Shown here: in pieces, positions 10,242 to 62,780 of the stretch
Layout of the letters: the number at the start of each line of letters is the position of its first letter
Position numbering within the stretch: the stretch's first letter is position 1
Assembly (NCBI GenBank): GCA_015680685.1
Contig: MNCI01003467.1
Coordinates: forward strand, 964,731-1,028,730
DNA length: 64,000 bases
Source: Gnetum montanum
Taxonomy: Eukaryota > Plantae > Gnetophyta
Reading direction: 5' to 3'
The notes under the pieces: generated by a model
What the model saw: the letters and a program-made list of their open reading frames with translations, nothing else
Databases searched by the model: none
What the model was told of the DNA's origin: nothing
Made by a program: the position numbers and the translations under genes

Positions 10242-11976
10242 TGTTGAAACACCACAAAAATTTGGACCCAACACTTTCAAACAAGAATCAAGCTAAGTCA
10301 TGATGCTTCCCAGCATGACCGAAACTTGTGAGCTTCACAAACAGCATTAAATAGAGTTGAATCAAGCAAGTAAAAGTTCCCTGAGATCCATTGGAGACTA
10401 CATCAACATTTGGAAACAAGAAATGTAGGTTTCAAACACAAAACACTTAGTTTTGACTAAGTAAACTTCTTGCACATAGGCCTGCATGCCCAGTGTGCAA
10501 CTCAGCGTGCAGCAACTTTTGGGCCCCAGAAATGAGTTAAAACATGCTAGAATTGAGCATCTGGACCCCCCAGGACCTTCCCCAAGGTTCCTAGTAGCTC
10601 TCAGGCACTTGAAAATCAAATTTTGGGCTCCAAATGATGGTCTTTCATTCTTGCACGCCTAGCGTACACGCCTAGCGTGGAGCAACTTTTGGGCCCCAAA
10701 AATGAGTCGAAACATGCTAGAATTGAGCATCTGGACCCCCCAAGACCTTCACTAGGATCTCCAATAGCTCCCAGGTACCTAAAAATCAAGTTTCAACCTC
10801 AAAATGATGCACTTCCATGACCTATACGCAAAGCATACGTACTCTGCACGCCCAGCGTGCAGCCTAGCGTACACCACCAGAAACGGCCCAAAACAGGCAT
10901 CAAAGGGAAATATTTTCACCTGAAATTAACTCCCAAAGGTAGGGAAACTATTGGGAATCATCGCAGGCACCTGAAAATCAAGTTTTAACCTTAAAATGAA
11001 GCATTTCCATGTGTGTACGCTGGGTACAATTTGGTGTACACTGAGCCTGTACGTTGAGGTTGATGCTGAGTCTATACGCTGGCATCCAGTATGCTGGCAT
11101 GCAACACGCTGGAATGAAGCACGTTGGCATCCTATATGTTGGCATGCAACATGCTGGCATGCAGCACGTTGGCATCCTATATGCTGGCATGCAGCACACT
11201 AGCATCTTGTACGCTGGCATGCAACACACTGGCATGTAGCACGTTGGCATCTTGTATGCTGGCATGCAGCATGCTGTACAGTTGTAATTTTCTATGCACC
11301 TGAACAATGCAGCCACATGTCATCTGACCCGAAATCCTCTCACCCACGGCCACTCATACCCTTCTAGATCTGAATCCAATGCCCAAAGACCTCATAAAAA
11401 CCCCAATTTTTCACTAGATCGAGGTTGGCAATTTTGGGGCAAATCGAAGACAAAAAAAAAAAAGAACTAGAGACATTGAGAAACCAGAGAGCAAAAACCC
11501 TGTACGTTGGACCTCAACTTTGCATGCTGAGCATATAGCCTTCACGCTGTGCCTGTAGTTCAAACTAGCACACCATCATCCCTCCGCATCCACCGGGGCT
11601 CTTCGTTCGCCTTATGTCAGATCCACAACTTCGTTTAGACCGGTGCACTGTAATCTAGATTATTTTTACAATAAAGTTTGCTTTATCCCTGGTTAATATC
11701 TATTATAGTTTGCATGCATTTTTTTCTGCATTCATGTTGATTTTCTTGCACGTTTATATCTTGTTTTATGTTTATCGTGTTGTTTACGCATAACCTAGCG
11801 TATTGCACATCAGCATACGTTGGGGAAGTCCTCGTTTGATCTGTGTGTGGACCATTCAAGGCACTCTACCTTCATCTATTCCAGCTTGCCCTCAAGCGAA
11901 GGTAGAGTCTTCTGTGCTTGTCTATAGATCTCTTGGTGTCTGTTTCATTCTTGCCTTGCACCGACGATTTCAAACA
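10242..11976 (+). mobile_element. Solo LTR (~1.7 kb) inserted between Athila protease and RT
   Basis: TGTTGAAA...TTTCAAACA termini; near-TSD gtaga/gtaca; host pol resumes as KSLKLKTLLANLEYSYL; retains CpG unlike its flanks; ~170-bp internal direct repeat (10511/10681). Strand is tentative. Confidence 0.75.
11076..11270 (+). repeat. 15-bp tandem repeat, 13 copies, with 45-bp higher-order pattern
   Basis: Units such as acgttggcatcctat / atgctggcatgcaac / atgctggcatgcagc. Confidence 0.95.
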
Positions 11977-16848: not shown

Positions 16849-19650
16849 ATGGTACCAAGGTGAGGACCACAAGTGGGAGGGGCTTCACAGACCAAGGAGA
16901 AGTAACCAAGAGGAACAAGGAGCTAGTAAGAACAATAATAATAGTCCATGAAGAAGCACTTGAAGTCATTCATGCAATAGGACCCCGTTTGATAGGGCCA
17001 TAAGTGGAATTTATTCACTACGTTTCCATATCAAAAACTAGCTAGGCAATGCAAGATGAGGCACCTAGTCTAAGGTCTAAATTTAAGGTCATTCTAACAA
17101 AGGCCTACTTGGAGAATATTAGGATCAAGGAGGTTCAAAGTTCTATTCTTTAGGATTTGAACTCTAGATCCTTCTTGAAGCTAGCGCTAGAAGATATCTG
17201 TGCACAACCACAAGGGTCTCCCATCTAGCTCATTCTCTCCAATAGTTGAGAATGGTACATTGGGGAGACCTACTTATTCTATAACAATTTAAAAGGAGAT
17301 GCATTAGTAAAAATCAAAGACATCACCATCTCCTACTTGGTTGAGGCCATTGCAAAGGCCCTCATGTCACTAGACATAGCAGCAAAATTGGCTGAGATTT
17401 TGATGCAAGTGGATCTAGACCCAAAGAAAGAATGGATGCAATGATGCTATAGGGTAGACCACAAAGAGTACAATTTTCTCACTAAGGAAAAGAGAGCATA
17501 CTTGAAAATTACATCTCATCACCTAAATCCAATGATAAGGCCTTGAAAAGTCACTACTTTCTCTATTTAATCATGTGTTTCTTTGAGTGGAAAGTTTTCA
17601 TTCAACCTTCCTTAGCTCTTTTCCTAGAAATAGAAAAATGTTTCAATAAAAATGAAAAAGGAATAAAGAGCCTTTCCTTTCCATACCTCATCTACATACT
17701 ATGCAAAAGGAGAGGCATAGCTTGCTATTTATTTAAATGGTCCACCATGCTCCTATTACATCATGACAAGAAAAGATGAAAGATAAGGTAGTAACTAACT
17801 ACAAGAAGAGGAGTAGTCACCACCACCACCATGTGCAACTCTAGAGACTATGCCAGAGATACTTGTAGTTTTTGAAGAAATAGAAAAATATAAAAAGAAA
17901 TAGCTATAACAACAAAAAAGATATGTAGGTGGTGGAGAATCCTCAAGCTACCATCTAGCTATGAGCCACTTAAACAAGGTTGCAAGAAGCATCCACTAGT
18001 GAGATATTGAGATTGTCCTACTAGTTGTAGTTTAAAGGAACTAAACACCCATAAGGCCTAATCAAAATACTTGAGAGATCATAGTTTCCATCCTTCAAAA
18101 AATGTTTCCTAAAATTTCAATAAGTGTTGTAGCCTTCTCTATCATGTTACAAAAAGGTAAGGGGGTGACTATCCTGGTGATGCAATACAAAGGCTAGGAT
18201 ACAATGGTAGAGGTGGTGGCTAATAGGATTGCTAAAGTGATGAATGCTCTTATAATGTTAGTTCTTGATATTAGCATAATTGTGGACATTTTTACATTTT
18301 CAGAAGTAGGAAGTGATTAGATAAATGCTACCCAACATGAGAAGGTATTGGAAAGACTAATTGGAACTAGGTAACTACTTTTAAAGATCTTTAATCTCTT
18401 GGATGATATCATTGTGAACTAGTTATAGTTGCTTGAGATAAGAAGAAAACTACTTATTAAAAACATGTAACTAAAGAAGACCAACATAGCTAATTGGTGG
18501 ATGGCCATTGAAGTTGTACAGTTACATGCTTATCTCTCTGATTATATGATCCTCAAGGCTTGAGCTTACCAAGGATGAAGCTTTTCAACAGCTTTAGATG
18601 AAACTTCAATAGGTCAAGAATGTAAAGGAGGTCATCATATTTGAAATGTCCTTTTCAAAAGTCATGACTTTCAACACTAACAAGGGCCTATTCTAGGTCT
18701 AGAAGAAAACCTTACTCCTCATAAAGAATAATAATCACCTATGCAACATTGAACAACAAAAGGATTGATTGGTCAAACTCATACACTAGTAGTAGTAGCA
18801 GCTCGCGAAGGTGAATCTTGATCTAAGGTTGGTAGTAAAAAAATCATAATCTCTTAATGAAGAAAGTCTATGCTCTTTATCAAAAAAAAAAACAATCATT
18901 AAGTTAGCCACCTAGAACAATGAAGCCCTAAAGTTTGAATATGTAAAAAATCAGTATAGGGATTAAATTGGACTTCTCAAATGAGTTAATAATAAGAAAA
19001 TTCAAATGCAAAAGACACAAATGAACAAGGCCCTCCAATAATTCTAGTGTAGAGGTAATGTACAGTAAGCATTCTATAATGGACTGAATTTGCTTGAAAA
19101 GGCTAAAATCTACTTGAAGGAGTTATATATTGAAGAGATGAAAGAGTATATGAAGCCTACCAACCTCAAGTATGCAAACTTGATGATACTAATAGCAAGG
19201 AAAATAGGGTTAAAATTAGAGAAGTAGGTGGCTAGTTCCTACCTCTTCTATGAGGTGGAATTCAAGTTCCATAAGGAGACAAAACAAAGGTTAGAGATAA
19301 CAAATGTAGAGTTTGAATTTATCAAAAGAAGATTCACTAATGAATGATCTATTGTTGAACACTTGGTCAAGAGGATGAATAGCTACTAGGAGCTACAGAA
19401 CCTTATATGGACATTTACCATAGAATGCAAAATCTTTGTAGCTTGGTTCATGAATGTGAAGGAAGTATTTCCTGTAATGCCTTGCCTATGAAACATTCCT
19501 ACACTGGCCCACATCAGCAAAGCTACTTGGACTATTTATGATCCACTAACCAAAGAAGGAAAGATGAAAGAACTTCTAGATGCTTTCAATATTCTAGTAG
19601 AAGCAACAATAGTAGCAAGTAAAATTCAACCTCTAGTAGCATCAAGATGA
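16849..19650 (+). pseudogene. Degenerate extra (env-like) ORF of the Athila-like element, with Transposase_32/ATHILA-type domain and charged C-terminal part
   Basis: LFYNNLKGDALVKIKDITISYLVEAIAKAL (~17274-17363) and SLSFPYLIYILCKRRGI (~17668-17718); lies between pol and the 3' LTR; ATG directly follows a candidate splice acceptor (tgtttgtgattatag|ATG). Confidence 0.65.
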
Positions 19651-49394: not shown

Positions 49395-49467
49395 ATCATG
49401 AAGTCACAAGTCATGGAAAATTTTAAAAATTTTAAAATGGGGATTGAAAATGAAAAGAACATTAAGA

Positions 49468-50440
49468 GGTTACAAGGTCGTTGGAACGGATGGGCTTTGC
49501 CCGTTTCTGTGTCTGGCAAACCCTGACGGCGACCGACTTCATCCAAGAGGTCATCTTGGAACTCCTAGGGGGGGAGGAATCCCTCCAAATTACCTATGAA
49601 AACATGGACACTAGGGACTATACGCTACACTGCACAGCCCCCCGAATGGACCAGCTTGACGGCTGTGGGTGCTATGGTAAGTTGGGCCATCGCGAGGCAG
49701 ATTGTCGATTTCGCAGGCCCCGATCGAAGAACCTGGCCCGCCAGCTTTTCGAGGAGGGAAACTGGGTCACCAGGGGCCATAAGGGATGCCTCCACCCCCC
49801 CAAGGCCTCCTCCCCCACCCCCCTCGCACACACTCACCCCGACCCGAACACGCTGACCCCCTCGCACCATGCCCCATCCCCCCCACCCANNNNNNNNNNN
49901 NNNNNNNNNNNNNNNNNNNNNNNNNNNNNNNNNNNNNNNNNNNNNNNNNNNNNNNNNNNNNNNNNNNNNNNNNNNNNNNNNNNNNNNNNNNNNNNNNNNN
50001 NNNNNNNNNNNNNNNNNNNNNNNNNNNNNNNNNNNNNNNNNNNNNNNNNNNNNNNNNNNNNNNNNNNNNNNNNNNNNNNNNNNNNNNNNNNNNNNNNNNN
50101 NNNNNNNNNNNNNNNNNNNNNNNNNNGTCCCCCGCCAAGACTCCCCACTGCTCCCAATCACCAGCCACCACTCACCAACCACACCCACCATAACCGAAAC
50201 CAGTGCTCCCCCCACTGGGAGAATGGGTCAACGTCGTCTGGAGGAGCACCCGGACCCGATAGTGCAAGGCATCGCAGTCCCTAGCTGAGGAAGCCGGCTG
50301 CACCCCTATGGTCCATGAGGCGGAGGGGCACCCAGGCTGCCTGACTGAGTCCCGGTCCAGAAGTTGACAAGCCCAACGACACATCGACTTGGGCCAACAG
50401 CAGACCTTACGGGAGGTCTACCAGCGCCACACCTCTGGTT
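49468..50440 (+). pseudogene. LINE ORF1, C-terminal part (zinc-knuckle region plus Pro-rich tail)
   Basis: RMGFARFCV...LQITYEN...CYGKLGHREADC resembles the plant L1 zf-CCHC_4 region; N-terminus absent; N gap 49890-50126. Confidence 0.75.
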
Positions 50441-50444
50441 GCGC

Positions 50445-53164
50445 ATGAAGATTTTCAGTTGGAATTGTAGGGGGTAGGGTACCCCCTATAAACGAAATAC
50501 CCTGCACCGTATTGTCAAAGAGGAGGATTGTGATATGGTCTGCCTCTAGGAAACCAAGCTGCAGGCAGCGGAATCTGGTCACCTCCAGTGGACGGGCTGG
50601 ACCACCTACCTACACCCTAGCTAGGGACGGGCCGGAGGCCTGGCCATTCTTGCACGCCCCACCACCACTCTAGTGGATGCCTCCCTATGGACCATCACGG
50701 TCCACGTCCCTGCCCATGGTTTTTGGCTAACCAACTTCTATGGGGTGCAAGCTTGGGAATCATGGCTTCATGAGTTGAATCGGGTGGCCTTGCTGGTGCC
50801 TGATCACAGCTCCTGGGTGGTTGTTGGTGACTTCAACAAGCGTATGTACCCTTGGGAGAAATTGGGGGGGGGCCGCCCCACCCCTCCTGGCATGCCAGAG
50901 TTCATGGAGTTCCTTGAGCGCTCTTCTCTCGTTGATTTACCCATTGCGAACTGCCGGTTCACTTGGAGCAATCGACAGAAAGGGGTGCACCGTGTCCTCT
51001 CCCGCATTGATCGAGTTTGCGTTAGCTCTGCTCTCCTCCTCAGCACTGCTATCAACGTGACCGGGCAGGAGTGGGCTACTTCTGACCACTGCTCGCTGGT
51101 CGTGTCCATTGGTCCACCTCAACCCTGGGCCCCACGCGCATTTTGGTTTGAGACCACATGGCTGACCAAACCGTGGCTTCGCCCCCTGGTGGAGGACATC
51201 TGGGCCGATTACCAGCTGGGTCGGATGGATCCTTGGAGCTTCCTCAAAGATGCTTTCCTTCAGCTCAAGTGGGCCATTCGGGCCCTCTCGGTGGAGGAGA
51301 AGTTTTCGTTTCATACTAGCCACAAGATGGTTCGGGAGTGGCTCGGACACATCAAGGCGCGATAAGAGACTGGGAGGACATGTACTTGGAGGAGATGCAT
51401 CTTCTCCATCAACTCTAGAGTCTAGATCATGAGGAGGAGACCTATTGGCGGTAGTGATCCCAGATTAGATGGCTCTGCGAGGGGGACCGACATACGAAAT
51501 TCTTCTTCGCCATGGCTAAGACGCGTGGCGAAGCCCACATCCGCGGCCTCCGTACTCAGGCTGGGGTGGTGGTTGAAGATCCACAGGAGATTGCCAACAA
51601 GCTCTCACATTATTGGGGACGCATTTGGACCAAGCACCCCACCCAGCCCATCTCCGTCCATGTGGCCAAGGTGCTCACGGCTGTGGACAATCAACTTCTT
51701 CTGGCCCCCTTCTCAGCGACAGAATTGACTAACACCATCAACAACATGCCGGGCGGTAAAGCGCCTGGACCAGACGGTTGGTCACTGGAGTTCTTCAGAG
51801 CTTTCTTGGATTTTGTGGGGCCCAATCTTCTAGATGCTTTCAACGTCATGCTGGCCAGACGACAGGTACGGTGTGAACTCAACTGCTCGCGCATCATCTG
51901 CATCCCAAAACAATTAAATGCACACCACCCAGAGCACTTTTGTCCCATTGGTGTGTGTAATGTTCTCATTCGTGTCTTCTCCAAACTCCTGGTCAATCGT
52001 CTGGGACCCCTCTTGCCTAAGTTGGTTGGACGCAATCAGGCGAGCTTTGTTCATGGTAGGACCCTTCAGGATCAGGTTCTTCTTATGCAAGAGGTCCTTC
52101 ATTCCCTCCGTACTATGGGGTTGCCTGGTCTATGTCTCAAACTAGACATAGCTCAGGCATATGATATGCTTAGTTGGGACGCCCTACATGACATCATGCA
52201 TAAGAAAGGCTTTGACCCTGATTTTATCTAATTATGTCTGCATATCTAGTCCTCCGCAGGTTTCTCTTTTGATGTGGGTGGGCGGTTGTGGGGATTTTCC
52301 TCCCCTAGTTGTGGACTGAGGCAAGGCGACCCCCTGTCCCCCTTGCTGTTCATCATTGCCATGGACCTCATGCAATTTTATTGCAGTACTTCGGGGGTGG
52401 AGGGCCTGGACATTGCGGGGGTGGCTTACCGTGTTGAACACTATGTCGACGATAACATGCTTCTCAGCCGGGCGGCTGCCCCTCAGGCACGGTGTATCAA
52501 CCTGGCCCTGACCAGATTGGCTGCCAAATTAGGATTGGAAATCAACCGCACAAAGTTAGCGGCGTACGTCATCAATGTGGACCCGCAGGTGCAGCACCGG
52601 GTTACACAAATCATGAACATTCAGTCTAGCAAACTCACCGATACCTACCTTGGTATCTCGCTGTTCCATTGGGGATGGAACAACACTTGGACTCCCCTCC
52701 TGGCCAAACTCAAGAAGCGCATATACCACTAGGCAAATCTTTTTCTTACCCGCAAGGGTCGCCTCCTCATGGCTATCGAAATCCTCGTGGCCACTGCGTG
52801 CTTTGTGGTGGTGGTCGCCGTGCCCTCCTCGTCCATAATTCACCAAATCAACGCCATGATCAGCAGCTTCATTTGACGGGGGGCAAAGGGGGGAGCAAGC
52901 TTCACCTTGTAAACTGGCACCATGTCGCCCATCCTCGATAGGCGGGAGGCTTGGGTGTGACGACTTTCGAAGATGAATGCACGATGGAACAACAACGGCT
53001 CATCTACCGGTTGACACGTGCGCTGGGAGAGCGCAGCTAGTGGGCCCGCATCACCCGTAGGAAATACATGCCTTGACAGCCTAGACTACATGCTTCGTAC
53101 CCTTGGTAGACCATCTGTCGGCACGTGCGGGAGATGTTGTGCCTGGGCTGGATCCACCTCGAGC
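50445..53164 (+). pseudogene. LINE ORF2: APE endonuclease plus reverse transcriptase, several stops
   Basis: MKIFSWNCRG, CL*ETK, VGDFN, FTWSN, SRIDR, SDH (APE); KAPGPDG, KLDIAQAYD, GLRQGDPLSPLLF, HYVDD, YLGISL, HLVNWHHVAHPR*AGGLG. Confidence 0.95.
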
Positions 53165-53300
53165 NNNNNNNNNNNNNNNNNNNNNNNNNNNNNNNNNNNN
53201 NNNNNNNNNNNNNNNNNNNNNNNNNNNNNNNNNNNNNNNNNNNNNNNNNNNNNNNNNNNNNNNNNNNNNNNNNNNNNNNNNNNNNNNNNNNNNNNNNNNN

Positions 53301-54708
53301 CTTATCCTGCGGACCTGCAGAGCGTGGAACGAGCTTGTGGACACCATGGAAACGACGCCGACGTACAAACCTGACTGCGCCATCTACCGGGATGACGCGG
53401 AACTCTGGCAGATAGTCTGCCAGTGCGGCTGGGCCGACCTACTGCAAAGGTTGGTCGGGGACCCTGACCTTCCTGACAACACGTTCTTTACTAATTGGCA
53501 CGGTGATCAAACTTTCTTTCATGGCCGTACAATTCGGCTCACGGAAGCTGCCCTGGCCAACTATTTGGGGGTCCCGACCGCTGGTGAGGTCATCCTGCCG
53601 ACCTCCCGCGGCCTCCAGAACTCTGCAACCTTTTTCAAGGGGCTAACCCTGAGAACATAGAGCCGCCAGGTCCCTCGGTCTTCTCTCCCGTGCCTCTGGG
53701 CTCATGCCTCCGCCTTGGTGGAATGTTTTTTCATCTAGTTCGGCAACGTGTCCAAGCTCCAGGGGTTGCATTTCACCTTCTTGAGGTGCTTGAAGGATGG
53801 CACCTAGGTTAACCTGCTGCGGTTCTTCCTTGAGACCCTCCGCCGTAAACACTGTGGGCACCACTCGGGGTTAATTTTGGCTTTGTGGCGGGGGGCGGGG
53901 GGGAAGGGGGCTCCTGGCCCATCCTCTGCCCCCCCTGGGGGTCGCCTCGCTGATGCCCCCCCACCACCCCGATTTGCCCCACCCCGGCCACTCAGCAGCG
54001 GTAGACCACTTTGAACCTCACCTGGGGAAGCCACTCTCGTCGAAATCCCCCCCCATTGCCTGACCCCCCCAGCACCCCCCGAAATTGGGAGGCAGAAATG
54101 CAACATGCGGTTGCTGCTTCTCGGGAGGCCGAGCAACAGATTTCGGAGGCAAAGTGGACCGAGACCCTGGCTTAGTGGTGTGCCGACCACGACGCCTAGC
54201 TTCGTGAATCGGCACAACAGCTGAGCCGGTAGCACACGCTCATGATGGAGACCTCACAGGCCCAGATCATTGATGAGCTCCGGGACCGAATCAGGGAGGA
54301 GCTACGCTAGGAAGAGGTGGATCGTCAGGCCGAGGAGGCAGTGGCCTGGGAGGAGTAGGAGCACCTGAGGGAGGAGGAGGAGCAACGGCAACGACAACTT
54401 GACCGGGCACACGTTCACAGTGCCCGTCAATGGCTCAAGGGGGGGGCCGTTGCTGATATAGCATTTTTGGTATTAGTTGTGAGAGCTCCTGGGGAGAGCT
54501 CAGACGACACATCAGATGCACGTCCGCTAGATTCCACCCTGATGCGGGGGACTCGTTGGCTGACCGGAGCAGTAGAGAGGCTACTATGTAGGGCATCCAA
54601 CAAGCCGTGAACTTCATGGACACCGAGGAGCATCGTGCCACACTGGACCTGCTTCATGAGCTAGAACGGCCTCTTTGTGCTTGTCGCCTTCTGCCAACTT
54701 GCCCCTAA
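53301..54708 (+). pseudogene. LINE-borne extra ORF: Transposase_32/ATHILA-like domain, Pro-rich linker, coiled coil, C-terminal J-domain
   Basis: Readable through premature stops (mostly TAG) and two frameshifts at homopolymer runs: FFTNWHGDQTFFHGRTIRLTEAALANYLGVPTAG; VNLLRFFLETL...SGLILALW; E/R/Q-rich helix; YSIFGISCESSWGELRRHIRCTSARFHPD...GIQQAVNFMDTEEHRATLD. Confidence 0.7.
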
Positions 54709-57469
54709 AGGCCCCCCCCCCCTTATTTGACACTGCCCCCCCTCCTTTGTTTGTTTGTTGGGGTTGCNTGGAGTCCTCCGTACTTTGAAATTTGTGTTTT
54801 TCCGGGCCCCCCCGTCAGAGTGGGCCATCCCTGATGTTCCCACCATTGTAATTGTTTACTCGTGTACCATAACTTTTAGTAATACAAACCCGAACATTCT
54901 CTCAAAAAAAAAGAACATTAAGATAAGTATCTTAAGATGTGATGGTAGTGGAGAATATGTTTTAAATGAGTTCAATAGTATTTTGGTAAGAGAGGTATGA
55001 AATAAGAATTGATAATGCCATATACACTAAAGTAGAATGTAGTTCTAGAAAGGAAAAATAGACAAATAACCAAGAAGATATGAAGCATGTTGAATGATGA
55101 TTAAGTATCAAAATCATTATGGATAGAAGTCACATATTATGTTATTTACATTATTAACATAATTATAATTGCAAGTTTGAATGACATTCATCCAACTAAA
55201 CAATGACCCAATAGTAGGGAATTGTTAATATCACATTTTCATCCATTTGGAAAAACTTGCTATGTTCATGTTTCACAAGCATACCATCAAAAGTTGGACC
55301 CCAAAGCCATGGTGGTTTTGCTACTTCATTATTCATTAGACAAAAAATCTTATGATTATGGAGCATAAAGAATCATAGGTTTCTAGAGTCACATGATGTC
55401 TTGTTTGATAACATCTTTAACAAATTCAATAACATTATGAGTCATGATGTAGCTAATAATGCCATAGTGATCTCCAACAAAGCTAATACTAAATTACAAC
55501 CTTTTATGATCCTTTATAAAGATAGTGATGAATAATTTGGTACAACTAAGGCTTCTAATTCCATAGAGTCATTTATAAGAATTAATATTGGTAGAGTTGG
55601 AACATAACAATGAAATGCCAATGAATTTATTATGAAATTAAAAAAATTTTGTAATAAAAAATTATTCTAATACAACTAAGTCAAATATGATACTTGAAGC
55701 AAGATAACCCATAATTATGTAACAAATAATGTAAAATAAAGTTTGGTATGTAGTAATGAAGGTAGAATACCATATGTTGATAAAGAATAACACATGGGAA
55801 CTAGTTAAAGGTTAACCACAATCCAAATTATTAAGATGTAAATTGATGTTTCATGATAAAAGAAAGGTTGATAATGTGGTGGATAACTATAAAAATTGTT
55901 TGGTTGTAAGAGGCTTTGATCAAAGAAAAGAAATTAATTTTCAAGCCTTTGCACCCACCATGAAACAAAGAACCATACAGTGTATCTTGTCTCTAGTAGC
56001 ATCCTATAGTTTGAAATTATATTAGATTGATGAAAAATATATCATTTGAAATGGAAATCCATAAGAAGAAATTTTTATATACTAGCCTAAATTCTTTGTG
56101 AATTCTAAGTTTAGTGATTATGTCTATAGACTAAAAAATTCCTTCTATGGATTAAAGCAAGCTTCCCATAAATGGTACATAAACTTTAGTGAATTTGTAC
56201 ATGAAATGAGGTTCAAATGATCAAATGCATATGTCAATATTTATGTTATGAAAAAAAATGACTCATGGAGTGGTATAATTATTCTTTTATATGTTTATGA
56301 TAGTGCAATCATAAGCAAGAATGCTCAATTGATAAATTGTAATAAAAATTAGCTTTGAAATATTAGATCTTAGCCTACTAAAATACTTTCTTGGTTGTTA
56401 GATTCATTAGTCAATGGGACATATGAAAGTTGAACAAAATCAATATGTTTTGGATTTGTTAGAAGAATATTGTATGCTAGACTATAAATCTTAATCAACA
56501 CCAGTAGATTCTAGTGTTGTAGCATGGGTAGATGACTCTAAATCTATTATGGATTCCACTATCTATGAAAATTTGTTTGAAAAGTTAATCTAACTAATAC
56601 TTGACCAAATACTACATATTATGTTAATATTTGATCTTATTTTACTAAATAACTAACTAGTATACAACTCAATTTGACCTAGGGTATATTAAGATATCTA
56701 AGGGACACAATAGATTATGGTTTAAACTATGATTATTCTTCAAGGATTGATCTAGAAGGTTATATAGATGTGAACTACAGTGGTGATACTTCATCATAGT
56801 GTTCAATTATAGGATTTTTGATTAAACATAACATGAATACAATCTTGTGGTGGTCAACAAAATAGAAGGTAGTTTCCTTAGCTTCTACTAAATCAGAATA
56901 CAAGATTGTAAGTAACTTGGTTATCAAAATAAATGACTTCTAGTTATTTAAAGAAATCAAGAAGGATACTATATTGCTAATAACTATTTAGTACAATAAT
57001 TAAAGTGTCATAAACTTGATTAAAAATCCAATATTTTAGGAGAAAAACAAGAAAATTGGAATTGTAGTGCACTATATTCAACATACCTTTATAGATGGGT
57101 TCATCTTTCCTACCTATATTAACATCAAGAATCAACTTGTAGATGGATTTACTAGTTCATTGAGTGTTAACATTTTCAATACTTTTGTAAATGTATTAAA
57201 TCTTCAATTCTTGTAAGTTAAAACTTATGTTTCTTTTTATGGAAAGTGTTAAAGATATTATTTCTTATATCATGGTTCATGATGTTTTGTATTAACATTT
57301 TATTTACCTCATTATTTTCCACTATGATTATTATGTCTTGGCATTGTTACTGTATGCCATCATTGTGGTGTTATATAACTTTTTTTATCTAAATAAATTT
57401 TTTTTATTTTCTTATTAGTACTTGGTTATAACTATTACCAATGGTTATGATTGATCATTAGCTTCTTAT

Positions 57470-60297: not shown

Positions 60298-62780
60298 ATG
60301 ATAGTCAATCAAACCCCAACTTCCTTGGTCAGTAACCTCTTTAACTTTACTAACTACCATGACATCCCAAAGTCGCTTCAGAACATAAATTTGTTCTACG
60401 ACTCCATAAACCCTTCAAGTGATGCCCATCAACATATACAATGTTTTGAAACTTCAGGCATCCACAACATTTTTGAAAACGATGTGGCATGTAGAGTATT
60501 TGTGACAACTTNGGCATCCAGAACATTTTTGAAAACGATGTGGCATGTAGAGTATTTGTGACAACTTTCAGAACCAAAGCAATCCAATGGTTTTTGATGC
60601 TCCCAAATGCCTCCATTAACTTATGGCAGGAGTTCAAAAATAAGTTTTTAACTCAATTTGAGAAATTCACAAGCCCTGCCATACCATCTAGCAACTTCAC
60701 CAGCTTAAGAAAGCTACCTGGGGAAAATGTTAAAGATTATAACCTTAGATTCCTTCATCAATTGGCCTATGTGCCATGGGAGATGCGTCCACAACCTGAT
60801 GGCATCCTCAACTTTTATCTCTCTACCATTGATCCATTCTTTGCCTATGCCATCAAATCAGACCCTAACATAATAGAAATACAGGGAGTAATGTCTAAGG
60901 CTGTGGAGCTAGAACAAATAATCCTTATGAACAGCATTCAAACCCAGTTTGGAATGATGAACGTTAGTAATCCTATGCAACATAGTCCCCTACCAACTTT
61001 CCCAATGACCAAAACTATGTTCCAAACTCCTATTCCCCTTCAAATGACTCAAGTAAAAAATAGCTATTTTCAAGGTCCCACATTTTCTCCATTGCTACCA
61101 TCTAACACTGGTTTGAATGAAGATCAATCAAAGACCTTAATTCAGTCCATCATAAACCCAAACGAGGTACCTAATCCTATTGAACCCCAAACTCGAACTC
61201 AAGATCAAATGACCCGGATATTAACTTCACTTCAAAAAATTTCCAACGAAGTAGTTGAACTAAAGAAAAACAACAACAAGGATCCTATACAACAAGAAAA
61301 GCCTAGTTCATCAGTCAATGACAATTATTGTTGCCTCCATAACACTAGGAAACATTCTGAGAACACTTGTCCCCAATTTTTAGCATTATACGGTGACAAC
61401 ACCCAATATCAACAAAATGGAAAATCTTCTGTTATGATTTTTAATGTACATCATGAAACAGAAAATGAAGAGGTTTCCTCATTGGAGCAAGTTATGGCAA
61501 ACAACCTAAACCCACTTAATTCTTGCTACCATAGACTTAAAGACATCATGAACAACATACAACAACAAACTAGGAATGAACCTTACACTTCTCTAAACAG
61601 AAGAGCTCCTAGTCAAAGTAACACAAATACTCAAACTAAGCCATCCCAAAAAAATGCTCCACAATGATCAAACCCACCTTCTATACTTAGAAGTACTCCA
61701 TCTCAACAAGAAGCTAAAGATAAACACAAGACTTACGATCTAGTTGAGGATTTGAAGAAAACCAAAGCTAACATCTCAATGTATGACCTTTTACAATTTA
61801 ACGGAATGAAACAGATAGTTCATACACTTGAAACTAGAAAAGAAACAACCCCAACCCTTGAAAGGCAAGTTCACTTCATAGAAAGTCCTAAGACATCATT
61901 GGTAAAAAATGTAAACAATTCCATGATGAGTGAGAAAGAGCAACCTCCTTTTTTAACAACTCTAATTATTTTGGAAAAGAATGTTTACAATTGTTTGATG
62001 GATTCTGGAGCAACTGTTAGTGTCATGCCACTTGAGGTATGTAAGGCTTTAGGAGCACAAATGATACCATGAACAAAAAGTGTGATTCAACTTGATGGGT
62101 CCAACGTACCTATAGTAGGGTCATTAAAAGGAGTGAAAGTGCAACTTAAACAATACCCTACGTTCACATGTTACACATATATCCTAATATTTGATATGTT
62201 GCCTACCTATGGTGTGTTGCTATCTAGGACTTTTGGAGCCAAGTTTGGGGGCTTCTTTAGGTTAGATTTCTCAGAGTTATTAATCCCTATCAAAGGAAAA
62301 TCTAAGTACATGACCATACCTCGAGAACCCTTCTGCAAACAAGTAGTTATAGCCTTGGATCAACAAAATCAATCTTTGGAAAATAAAAATGCCAATTTTT
62401 ATGTTGGGGTTCATAAGGTTGAGTGCAATGAACATGTTGAAAATGACTATGTGAATGGAATTACAAAAATAAATCTTGTCTATCATGTAGATTCCATCCA
62501 GTCTTATCAAAATTCTAGAGAAGGTGAAGAAAGCTATGGAGACATCTTACCTTATCAACAACATGATGGATTTCGTCTAAGTGATCCACCACCTTTAGGG
62601 GAAGATAACGATATAAATAAGACCCTACCTCTTAAAATAGTTCAAGGTGTGCTAAATTTTAATAACACATCCATGGAACATGCTCCTAGAAAGGCTATAT
62701 TTGATGACCCCCAAGACCTACACCTACCATTGAAACTTATATCAAAGAAAAAATTGATAGAAAATAAACAAGCAAGTTAA
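60298..62780 (+). pseudogene. gag: gag-protease of Tat-like family B (few stops)
   Basis: DVACRVFVTTFRTKAIQWF..LP..SINLWQEFKNKFLTQF (gag core); YCCLHNTRKHSENTC (Cys/His knuckle); CLMDSGATVSVMP and YGVLLSRTF (aspartic protease). Confidence 0.9.

Follow-up and report, generated by a model that had tools for sequence, protein, structure and literature searches.

A domain X and a putative J-domain at the 3′ end of the coding region in an L1-type LINE family represented in Gnetum montanum

The LINE insertion and its surroundings

The window, a stretch of 64,000 nucleotides from a contig of Gnetum montanum to which all positions refer, has an overall GC content of about 35% and one single GC-rich island with about 52% GC at 49.4 to 54.9 kb. 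An exact 15-nt repeat, AAAAGAACATTAAGA, is present on the forward strand at both ends of this island. The 5′ copy of this target-site duplication (TSD) at 49453 to 49467 is located where the GC content jumps from about 35% to about 52%, and the 3′ copy at 54909 to 54923 stands directly after a run of nine A residues. Since the 15-nt TSD is exact and an A tail directly precedes its 3′ copy, positions 49468 to 54908 are a single retrotransposed unit. The TSD pair, the A9 tail, and the GC-rich island mark this unit as the insertion of an L1-type LINE on the forward strand, which contains two gaps of N letters, at 49890 to 50126 and at 53165 to 53300. A second copy of the LINE was not found within the window.

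Plant L1-clade LINEs possess an ORF1 with a zinc knuckle and an ORF2 with APE endonuclease, reverse transcriptase (RT), and zinc-finger region, in some of them also with an archaeal-like RNase H. Remnants of most of these parts are visible on the forward strand of the insertion. An ORF1 remnant, recognized in the translation at 49481 to 50284 and interrupted by a gap, has a zinc-knuckle-like motif (CGCYGKLGHREADC) and a Pro-rich tail, and gave no match in Pfam. The putative APE-type endonuclease part of ORF2 at 50673 to 51365 matched Exo_endo_phos_2 (E value of 0.003) and Exo_endo_phos (0.0045), both under the Pfam cut-off, and this piece had no match in the PDB. The RT at 51512 to 52732 is present in two pieces, 51512 to 52231 and 52274 to 52732, which matched RVT_1 with E values of 1.9e-9 and 7.7e-9, respectively. 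Its best solved relative in the PDB was the human LINE-1 ORF2p (3.5e-16), with the R2 proteins behind at 1.4e-11. Because of the RVT_1 matches and of human L1 ORF2p as the best PDB match, the element is assigned by sequence kinship to the L1-type LINEs. The post-RT part of ORF2 (...GGLGV...KY...) at 52733 to 53164 was readable in a three-frame translation through stops and a frame change and is also covered by contigs of the LINE family. A Pfam match to the zinc-finger region zf-RVT was not obtained with the pieces flanking the gap at 53165 to 53300, in or next to which this region is expected. The 3′ UTR together with the A9 tail (54906 to 54914) extends from 54709 to 54914, and at position 54912 many DNA contigs of the family and RNA reads continue into A-rich tails.

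With 8 to 11 stops, the number depending on the frame chosen through a linker region, and at least two frame shifts, this LINE copy is dead, and it is probably 5′-truncated. The copy itself is a decayed representative; its value is in the LINE family to which it belongs. Old remains of LTR retrotransposons, which are AT-rich, seem to have been the insertion site of the LINE. A fragment of a Ty1/copia-type RT at 55843 to 56022 on the forward strand, just 3′ of the LINE, matched RVT_2 below the cut-off (4.2e-5). Toward the end of the window, a long open frame at 60495 to 62777 (forward strand), which contains a Retrotrans_gag domain (7.4e-12) and is followed by more open pieces, is a better-preserved LTR retrotransposon. 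On the reverse strand, a repetitive reading rich in Cys, Gln, and His (CQHIGCQRAACQHVACQH...) in a locally GC-richer patch at 10929 to 11319 gave only a weak match to Keratin_B2_2 and probably represents a short tandem repeat rather than a gene.

The 3′ coding part and its conservation in the LINE family

The original prediction had proposed for positions 53301 to 54708 about 470 codons, readable through mostly TAG stops and two frame shifts. A readable path of this kind exists on the forward strand. Its frame-1 part extends from 53301 to about 54011, its frame-3 part from about 54005 to 54445, and its frame-2 part from 54457 to 54705, with a TAA at 54706 as the end. The stops in this path are the TAG codons at 53658, 53736, 53805, 54173, 54197, 54230, 54308, 54356, and 54589 and the TGA codons at 54012 and 54454, so that the predominance of TAG was found as described; the second shift, in a run of eight G residues, was confirmed, and the first one lies somewhere within a poorly conserved linker of variable length.

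Four parts could be discriminated downstream of the first 15 codons. A conserved domain of about 185 codons, designated domain X, occupies positions 53346 to 53900 in frame 1 and is interrupted by the stops at 53658, 53736, and 53805. It is followed by a variable Pro-rich linker with poly-C runs at 53901 to 54235, the frame of which is uncertain and which contains at least one frame change. The segment at 54236 to 54445, which is read in frame 3 and interrupted by the stops at 54308 and 54356, is charged, rich in Glu, Arg, and Gln, and probably helical (coiled-coil-like). The G8 run with the frame change of this copy (54439 to 54446) leads to the putative J-domain at 54457 to 54705, which is in frame 2, contains the HPD tripeptide at 54535 to 54543 and a stop at 54589, and ends at the natural TAA stop codon at 54706 to 54708.

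A query stretch of 2,621 letters was aligned with DNA contigs of two organisms at a likeness of at least 80%, which yielded 6729 and 5988 aligned contigs, respectively; the LINE family is very abundant. That other copies might lack the ORF had been named as an argument against the module; instead, thousands of contigs from both organisms covered every bin of the region from 53356 to 54675, with a depth similar to that in the RT region. At three of its stops, relatives of this copy have sense codons. In place of the stop at 53805, C was present in 5323 of the 5368 depth units, resulting in a CAG codon; the relatives possess CC at 54454 to 54455 and therewith CCA where this copy has TGA; and an RNA relative reads CAG instead of the TAG at 54356. 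In a comparison of the family from 52300 to 54920 in one run, T or A in this copy stood opposite to C or G in most contigs at 172 listed places, and the reverse situation occurred at 116. This base bias and the many TAG stops fit cytosine deamination in a silenced copy.

In the G8 run, 18 of the 52 RNA reads had two letters fewer, and these reads translate straight across as WLRGGRCPY. This indicates that the helical segment and the J-domain are in one frame in transcribed relatives. Within the helical segment, the changes at 54304 and 54313 in the family contigs are silent in frame 3, and the GC contents at the three codon positions were 0.77, 0.34, and 0.73. The linker had the lowest DNA depth and almost no RNA reads, with a trough at 53972 to 54235. 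Its length varies among the copies, since some DNA contigs skip 89 nt (53959 to 54049) or 62 nt (54024 to 54087). At position 54210, this copy has a C and nearly all family contigs an A. Because this C-to-A exchange would create a TAG in frame 3 while being silent in frames 1 and 2, a reading of the linker in frame 3, the frame of the original prediction, where the sequence resembles a coiled coil, is doubtful.

The evidence for selection comes from a stretch of 30 nt downstream of position 54513 that ends in the HPD codons. Of its 30 letters, 11 differ between this copy and a diverged relative, which was represented by 17 DNA contigs and 52 RNA reads. When the codon changes were counted in frame 2, seven were synonymous and one was non-synonymous, compared to 0 and 8 in the two alternative frames, and the resulting peptides were RRTSARFHPD in the relative and RCTSARFHPD in this copy. 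The ratio of seven synonymous changes to one non-synonymous change in frame 2 is direct evidence that the region with HPD at its end is under purifying selection. Both domain X and the J-domain are conserved, and the direct evidence for purifying selection concerns the J-domain.

Relatives of this copy are transcribed. In an oligo-dT, unstranded library, 918 RNA reads were aligned, some of which span the transition from the helical segment to the J-domain, but these reads are mostly less than 90% alike to this copy and do not carry strand information. An intact copy was not observed. The agreement in composition between the module and ORF2, which had been taken as a sign of long residence, was also seen: the N-terminal part has a GC content at the third codon position of 0.72 and an A content at this position of 0.09, which agrees with the endonuclease and RT regions (0.55 to 0.67 and 0.09 to 0.15, respectively). 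The data support the view that positions 53301 to 54708 belong to the coding sequence of an L1-type LINE family, as an integral and long-resident part under selection, and are not a product of chance.

Identity and origin of the putative J-domain and domain X

The presence of a J-domain, which the original prediction had suggested, was corroborated from several sides, and positions 54457 to 54705 very likely encode such a domain. In the piece from 54457 to 54588, DnaJ (PF00226) was the only Pfam match, with an E value of 0.11 over the profile positions 3 to 33. The score of this 44-aa piece was 13.1 bits compared to a Pfam gathering score of 27.8 for a domain that is split here by a stop and was scored in pieces; the low scores result from the broken and divergent state of this copy. 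All seven matches of the piece in the PDB were J-domains, aligned in register through the HPD tripeptide, with dnj-12 as the best one (0.11). HPD follows the Tyr residue with which the stretch starts at a distance of 29 residues, which we take to be the canonical spacing of J-domains. The second piece, downstream of the stop at 54589, presumably follows the pattern of helices III and IV of a J-domain (I..A...L/M....R...D), and matches of this piece were found neither in the PDB nor in Pfam. A search for homologues of the J-domain piece among proteins of 0.55 to 1.75 times the query length yielded nothing. When AlphaFold2 was given this 44-aa fragment alone and no alignment, it predicted a beta hairpin and not helices with a mean pLDDT of 69, a prediction that we regard as unreliable for a fragment.

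Domain X has one recognizable relative. An exhaustive phmmer search with the query 53301 to 53657 against 1.84 billion representative proteins returned four matches. One of them, P0003, is a 91-aa ORF of a transcript assembly from Welwitschia mirabilis (7.3e-5), which aligns over its whole length with 32% identity and gave a Smith-Waterman score of 123, compared to 25 ± 4 for shuffled sequences. The other three, P0001, P0002, and P0004, are repetitive proteins in which one short low-complexity stretch was matched, and they were rejected as relatives. A profile search with the domain X alignment in 5.8 billion proteins, covering those of 0.55 to 1.75 times the query length, gave nothing beyond P0003, related loci were not detected when the alignment was compared with metagenome contigs and viral contigs, and P0003 itself had no match in Pfam. 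With AlphaFold2, the two-sequence alignment resulted in a pLDDT of 38, which is unusable for a fold comparison. On the basis of these sequence comparisons, domain X is regarded as a real domain that is conserved across diverged elements, almost absent from the protein databases, and not part of a recognized family. Together with the Welwitschia relative, this points to a gnetophyte as the host. With one detectable relative in 1.84 billion representative proteins, domain X would be a lineage-restricted domain of transposable elements that was missed by current annotation.

The Welwitschia ORF also bears on the way in which the module is connected to ORF2, a junction that is hidden, together with the end of ORF2, by the assembly gap of 136 N letters at 53165 to 53300. 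The first Met of P0003 is opposite to the Met codon at 53346, this Met and the residues after it, M-x-x-T-P-T-Y/F-x-P, are conserved between the two sequences, and the annotation of the Welwitschia ORF, which begins at the equivalent Met, is given in truncated form as "ORF type:comp". All this would agree with a three-ORF LINE, in which the conserved Met 53346 is the start of an independent third ORF that overlaps the ORF2 stop or is located downstream of it. Between the gap and this Met, however, none of the 15 codons from 53301 to 53345 (forward strand; LILRTCRAWNELVDT) is a stop, and they share the frame of the following part, which favors a fusion to ORF2. This peptide, for which a weak F-box-like match was the only one in Pfam (0.16), may resemble the end of a zf-RVT region (H-L-x-x-x-C...W), which would likewise speak against a separate ORF. 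A three-ORF structure is therefore a serious possibility that falls just short of an even chance, and ORF2 tail and separate ORF3 are to be treated as about equally probable. At the left edge of the gap, position 53164, 20 DNA contigs continue into a common 30-nt sequence that is absent from the window. Since these contigs run past the edge, the letters hidden by the gap can be recovered from public reads.

The original prediction had further connected domain X with accessory ORFs of LTR retrotransposons. For comparison, an Athila-like accessory ORF remnant is present in the window outside the LINE, at 17250 to 17776 on the forward strand, with a sub-threshold match to PF20167 (0.13, positions 113 to 176 of 177). 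A homologue search with this piece found no relative among proteins of 0.55 to 1.75 times its length. According to this reading, domain X would be a distant member of the ATHILA ORF-1, Transposase_32, or plant mobile domain (PMD, PF10536) group, and an accessory module would have been exchanged between LTR elements and a LINE. The motif pattern that had been noticed in both ORFs could be reproduced: the best local alignment by hhalign between the domain X alignment and the Athila-like ORF was FFTNWHGD...IRLTEAALANYL versus FYNNLKGD...ITISYLVEAIAKAL, with a P value of 0.026, and the nearest named clusters in a protein atlas, all of them at 0.9 or below, included ATHILA (PF03078, 0.89) and Transposase_32 (PF20167, 0.87).

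The likeness did not exceed the level of chance, however. The hhalign probability was 1.9%; neighbors at this level in the atlas are, by its own calibration, probably a wrong lead; BLASTP gave no alignment between domain X and the Athila-like piece; and the Smith-Waterman scores of the whole sequence and of its halves were reached by 89 of 1000, 376 of 2000, and 654 of 2000 shuffled sequences, respectively. These tests were the only ones with X-joined read-through strings, and the database searches were done with separate pieces. A Pfam search with nine pieces from 53301 to 54708 produced nothing significant, and PF20167, PF03078, and PF10536 were not matched by any of these pieces or by P0003 at E values up to 10, in a search in which the HMMER filters drop most matches above about 0.1. 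A Transposase_32 protein was also not among the phmmer matches from the 1.84 billion proteins. The proposed resemblance of the N-terminal part to Transposase_32 or ATHILA domains was thus not confirmed by profile, and a movement of the module between LTR and non-LTR classes is not supported by any formal test, with the hhalign P value and the atlas neighbors below 0.9 as weak leads. Membership of domain X in this group is less likely than not. Should a deep profile nevertheless connect domain X to ATHILA, Transposase_32, or PMD, this would imply that modules were exchanged between classes of retrotransposons and that the group reaches into the gymnosperms.

That the gap at 53165 to 53300 joins unrelated sequences, as an assembly chimera or at the boundary of an LTR or another element, is very unlikely. 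The gap is real, and its left edge in the post-RT region is located, as we assume, about 200 aa before the canonical zinc finger of a plant L1 ORF2. On account of this distance, the missing sequence is probably longer than 136 nt. On the other hand, the two copies of the TSD enclose both sides together as a single insertion, the GC content and the composition by codon position are equal on both sides, and the same runs cover both sides as repeats with comparable depth. LINEs can transduce flanking sequences, but the capture of a host J-protein gene fragment by this single copy, through 3′ transduction or template switch and outside the family, is also very unlikely, because the stretch is covered by thousands of contigs from two organisms, its protein sequence is kept in diverged relatives, it precedes the 3′ UTR and A tail that belong to the element itself, and no cellular homologue of domain X was found among the 1.84e9 proteins searched with phmmer.

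Possible function and comparison with known elements

Taken together, the stretch most likely represents the 3′ portion of the coding region in a dead and probably 5′-truncated copy of a high-copy L1-clade LINE family of a gymnosperm, probably a gnetophyte, in which endonuclease and RT are followed by domain X, the Pro-rich linker, the charged helical segment, and a C-terminal J-domain with HPD motif. The J-domain would dock to a host Hsp70 and stimulate its ATPase activity, and the client of this Hsp70 may be a nearby LINE protein, its ribonucleoprotein particle (RNP), or a partner bound by domain X. Polyomavirus T antigens recruit Hsc70 via a J-domain. A LINE protein with its own co-chaperone may assist in the folding or assembly of the large ORF2 protein and its RNP, or may remodel the partner of domain X, and an own J-domain would free the element in part from the J-proteins of the host. 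Alternatively, and speculatively, the domain may interfere with J-protein-dependent silencing of transposable elements by the host, of the kind mediated by SILENZIO, an Arabidopsis J-protein that acts in this silencing (PMC8616336). The anti-silencing or chromatin role that had been put forward for the module is speculation.

A tentative scenario, held with a little less than even confidence, would be that a gnetophyte L1 lineage incorporated into its coding region both a J-domain co-chaperone module and a lineage-restricted domain X, which were then maintained by selection while the lineage was massively amplified. Within the reach of the searches, this would be the first retrotransposon with an Hsp70-recruiting domain of its own, which might promote RNP assembly or interfere with silencing that depends on J-proteins and Hsp70. 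A description of a LINE or another retrotransposon with a DnaJ or J-domain was not found in the literature searched, which is not a proof of absence. LINEs rarely gain protein modules, and each of the known gains has informed on the limits to retrotransposition. A selected J-domain in a family of very high copy number would point to the recruitment of Hsp70 as a selectable step in the life cycle of plant LINEs.

Compared to known plant L1-clade LINEs, this element likewise has an RT closest to L1 ORF2p, a putative remnant of an APE-type endonuclease, an ORF1 remnant with a zinc knuckle, an A tail, and an A-rich TSD. It differs by the additional 185-aa domain, linker, helical segment, and J-domain downstream of the RT and zinc-finger region. 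The RNase H in plant L1 elements is another gain of a domain at the 3′ end of a LINE, and the RNase H added in some of these elements was not seen in the available sequence of this LINE. With the solved J-domains of the DnaJ/Hsp40 group (PF00226), the J-domain stretch of the LINE shares HPD, the canonical distance, and the register, whereas it is encoded by a retrotransposon, is located at the extreme C-terminus, and comes without G/F or zinc-finger regions. With ATHILA ORF-1, Transposase_32, and PMD, domain X has a short motif likeness (F-F/Y-x-N-x-x-G-D ... I-x-L/I-S/T ... L-A-x-x-L) in common, but neither a profile match nor a significant pairwise similarity. PMD has been found only in angiosperms according to a review (PMC8616336), whereas the host of this LINE is a gymnosperm.

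Gains of domains at the 3′ end of the coding region are already known in LINEs, and a J-domain in a retrotransposon was not found described. Insect R1 LINEs gained a tobamovirus-like SF1 helicase domain at the C terminus of ORF2 (PMC4686597). The event would be of the same kind, the addition of a module at the 3′ end of the coding region, but it concerns another LINE clade, another host kingdom, and another module, a co-chaperone J-domain combined with a domain of no known family.
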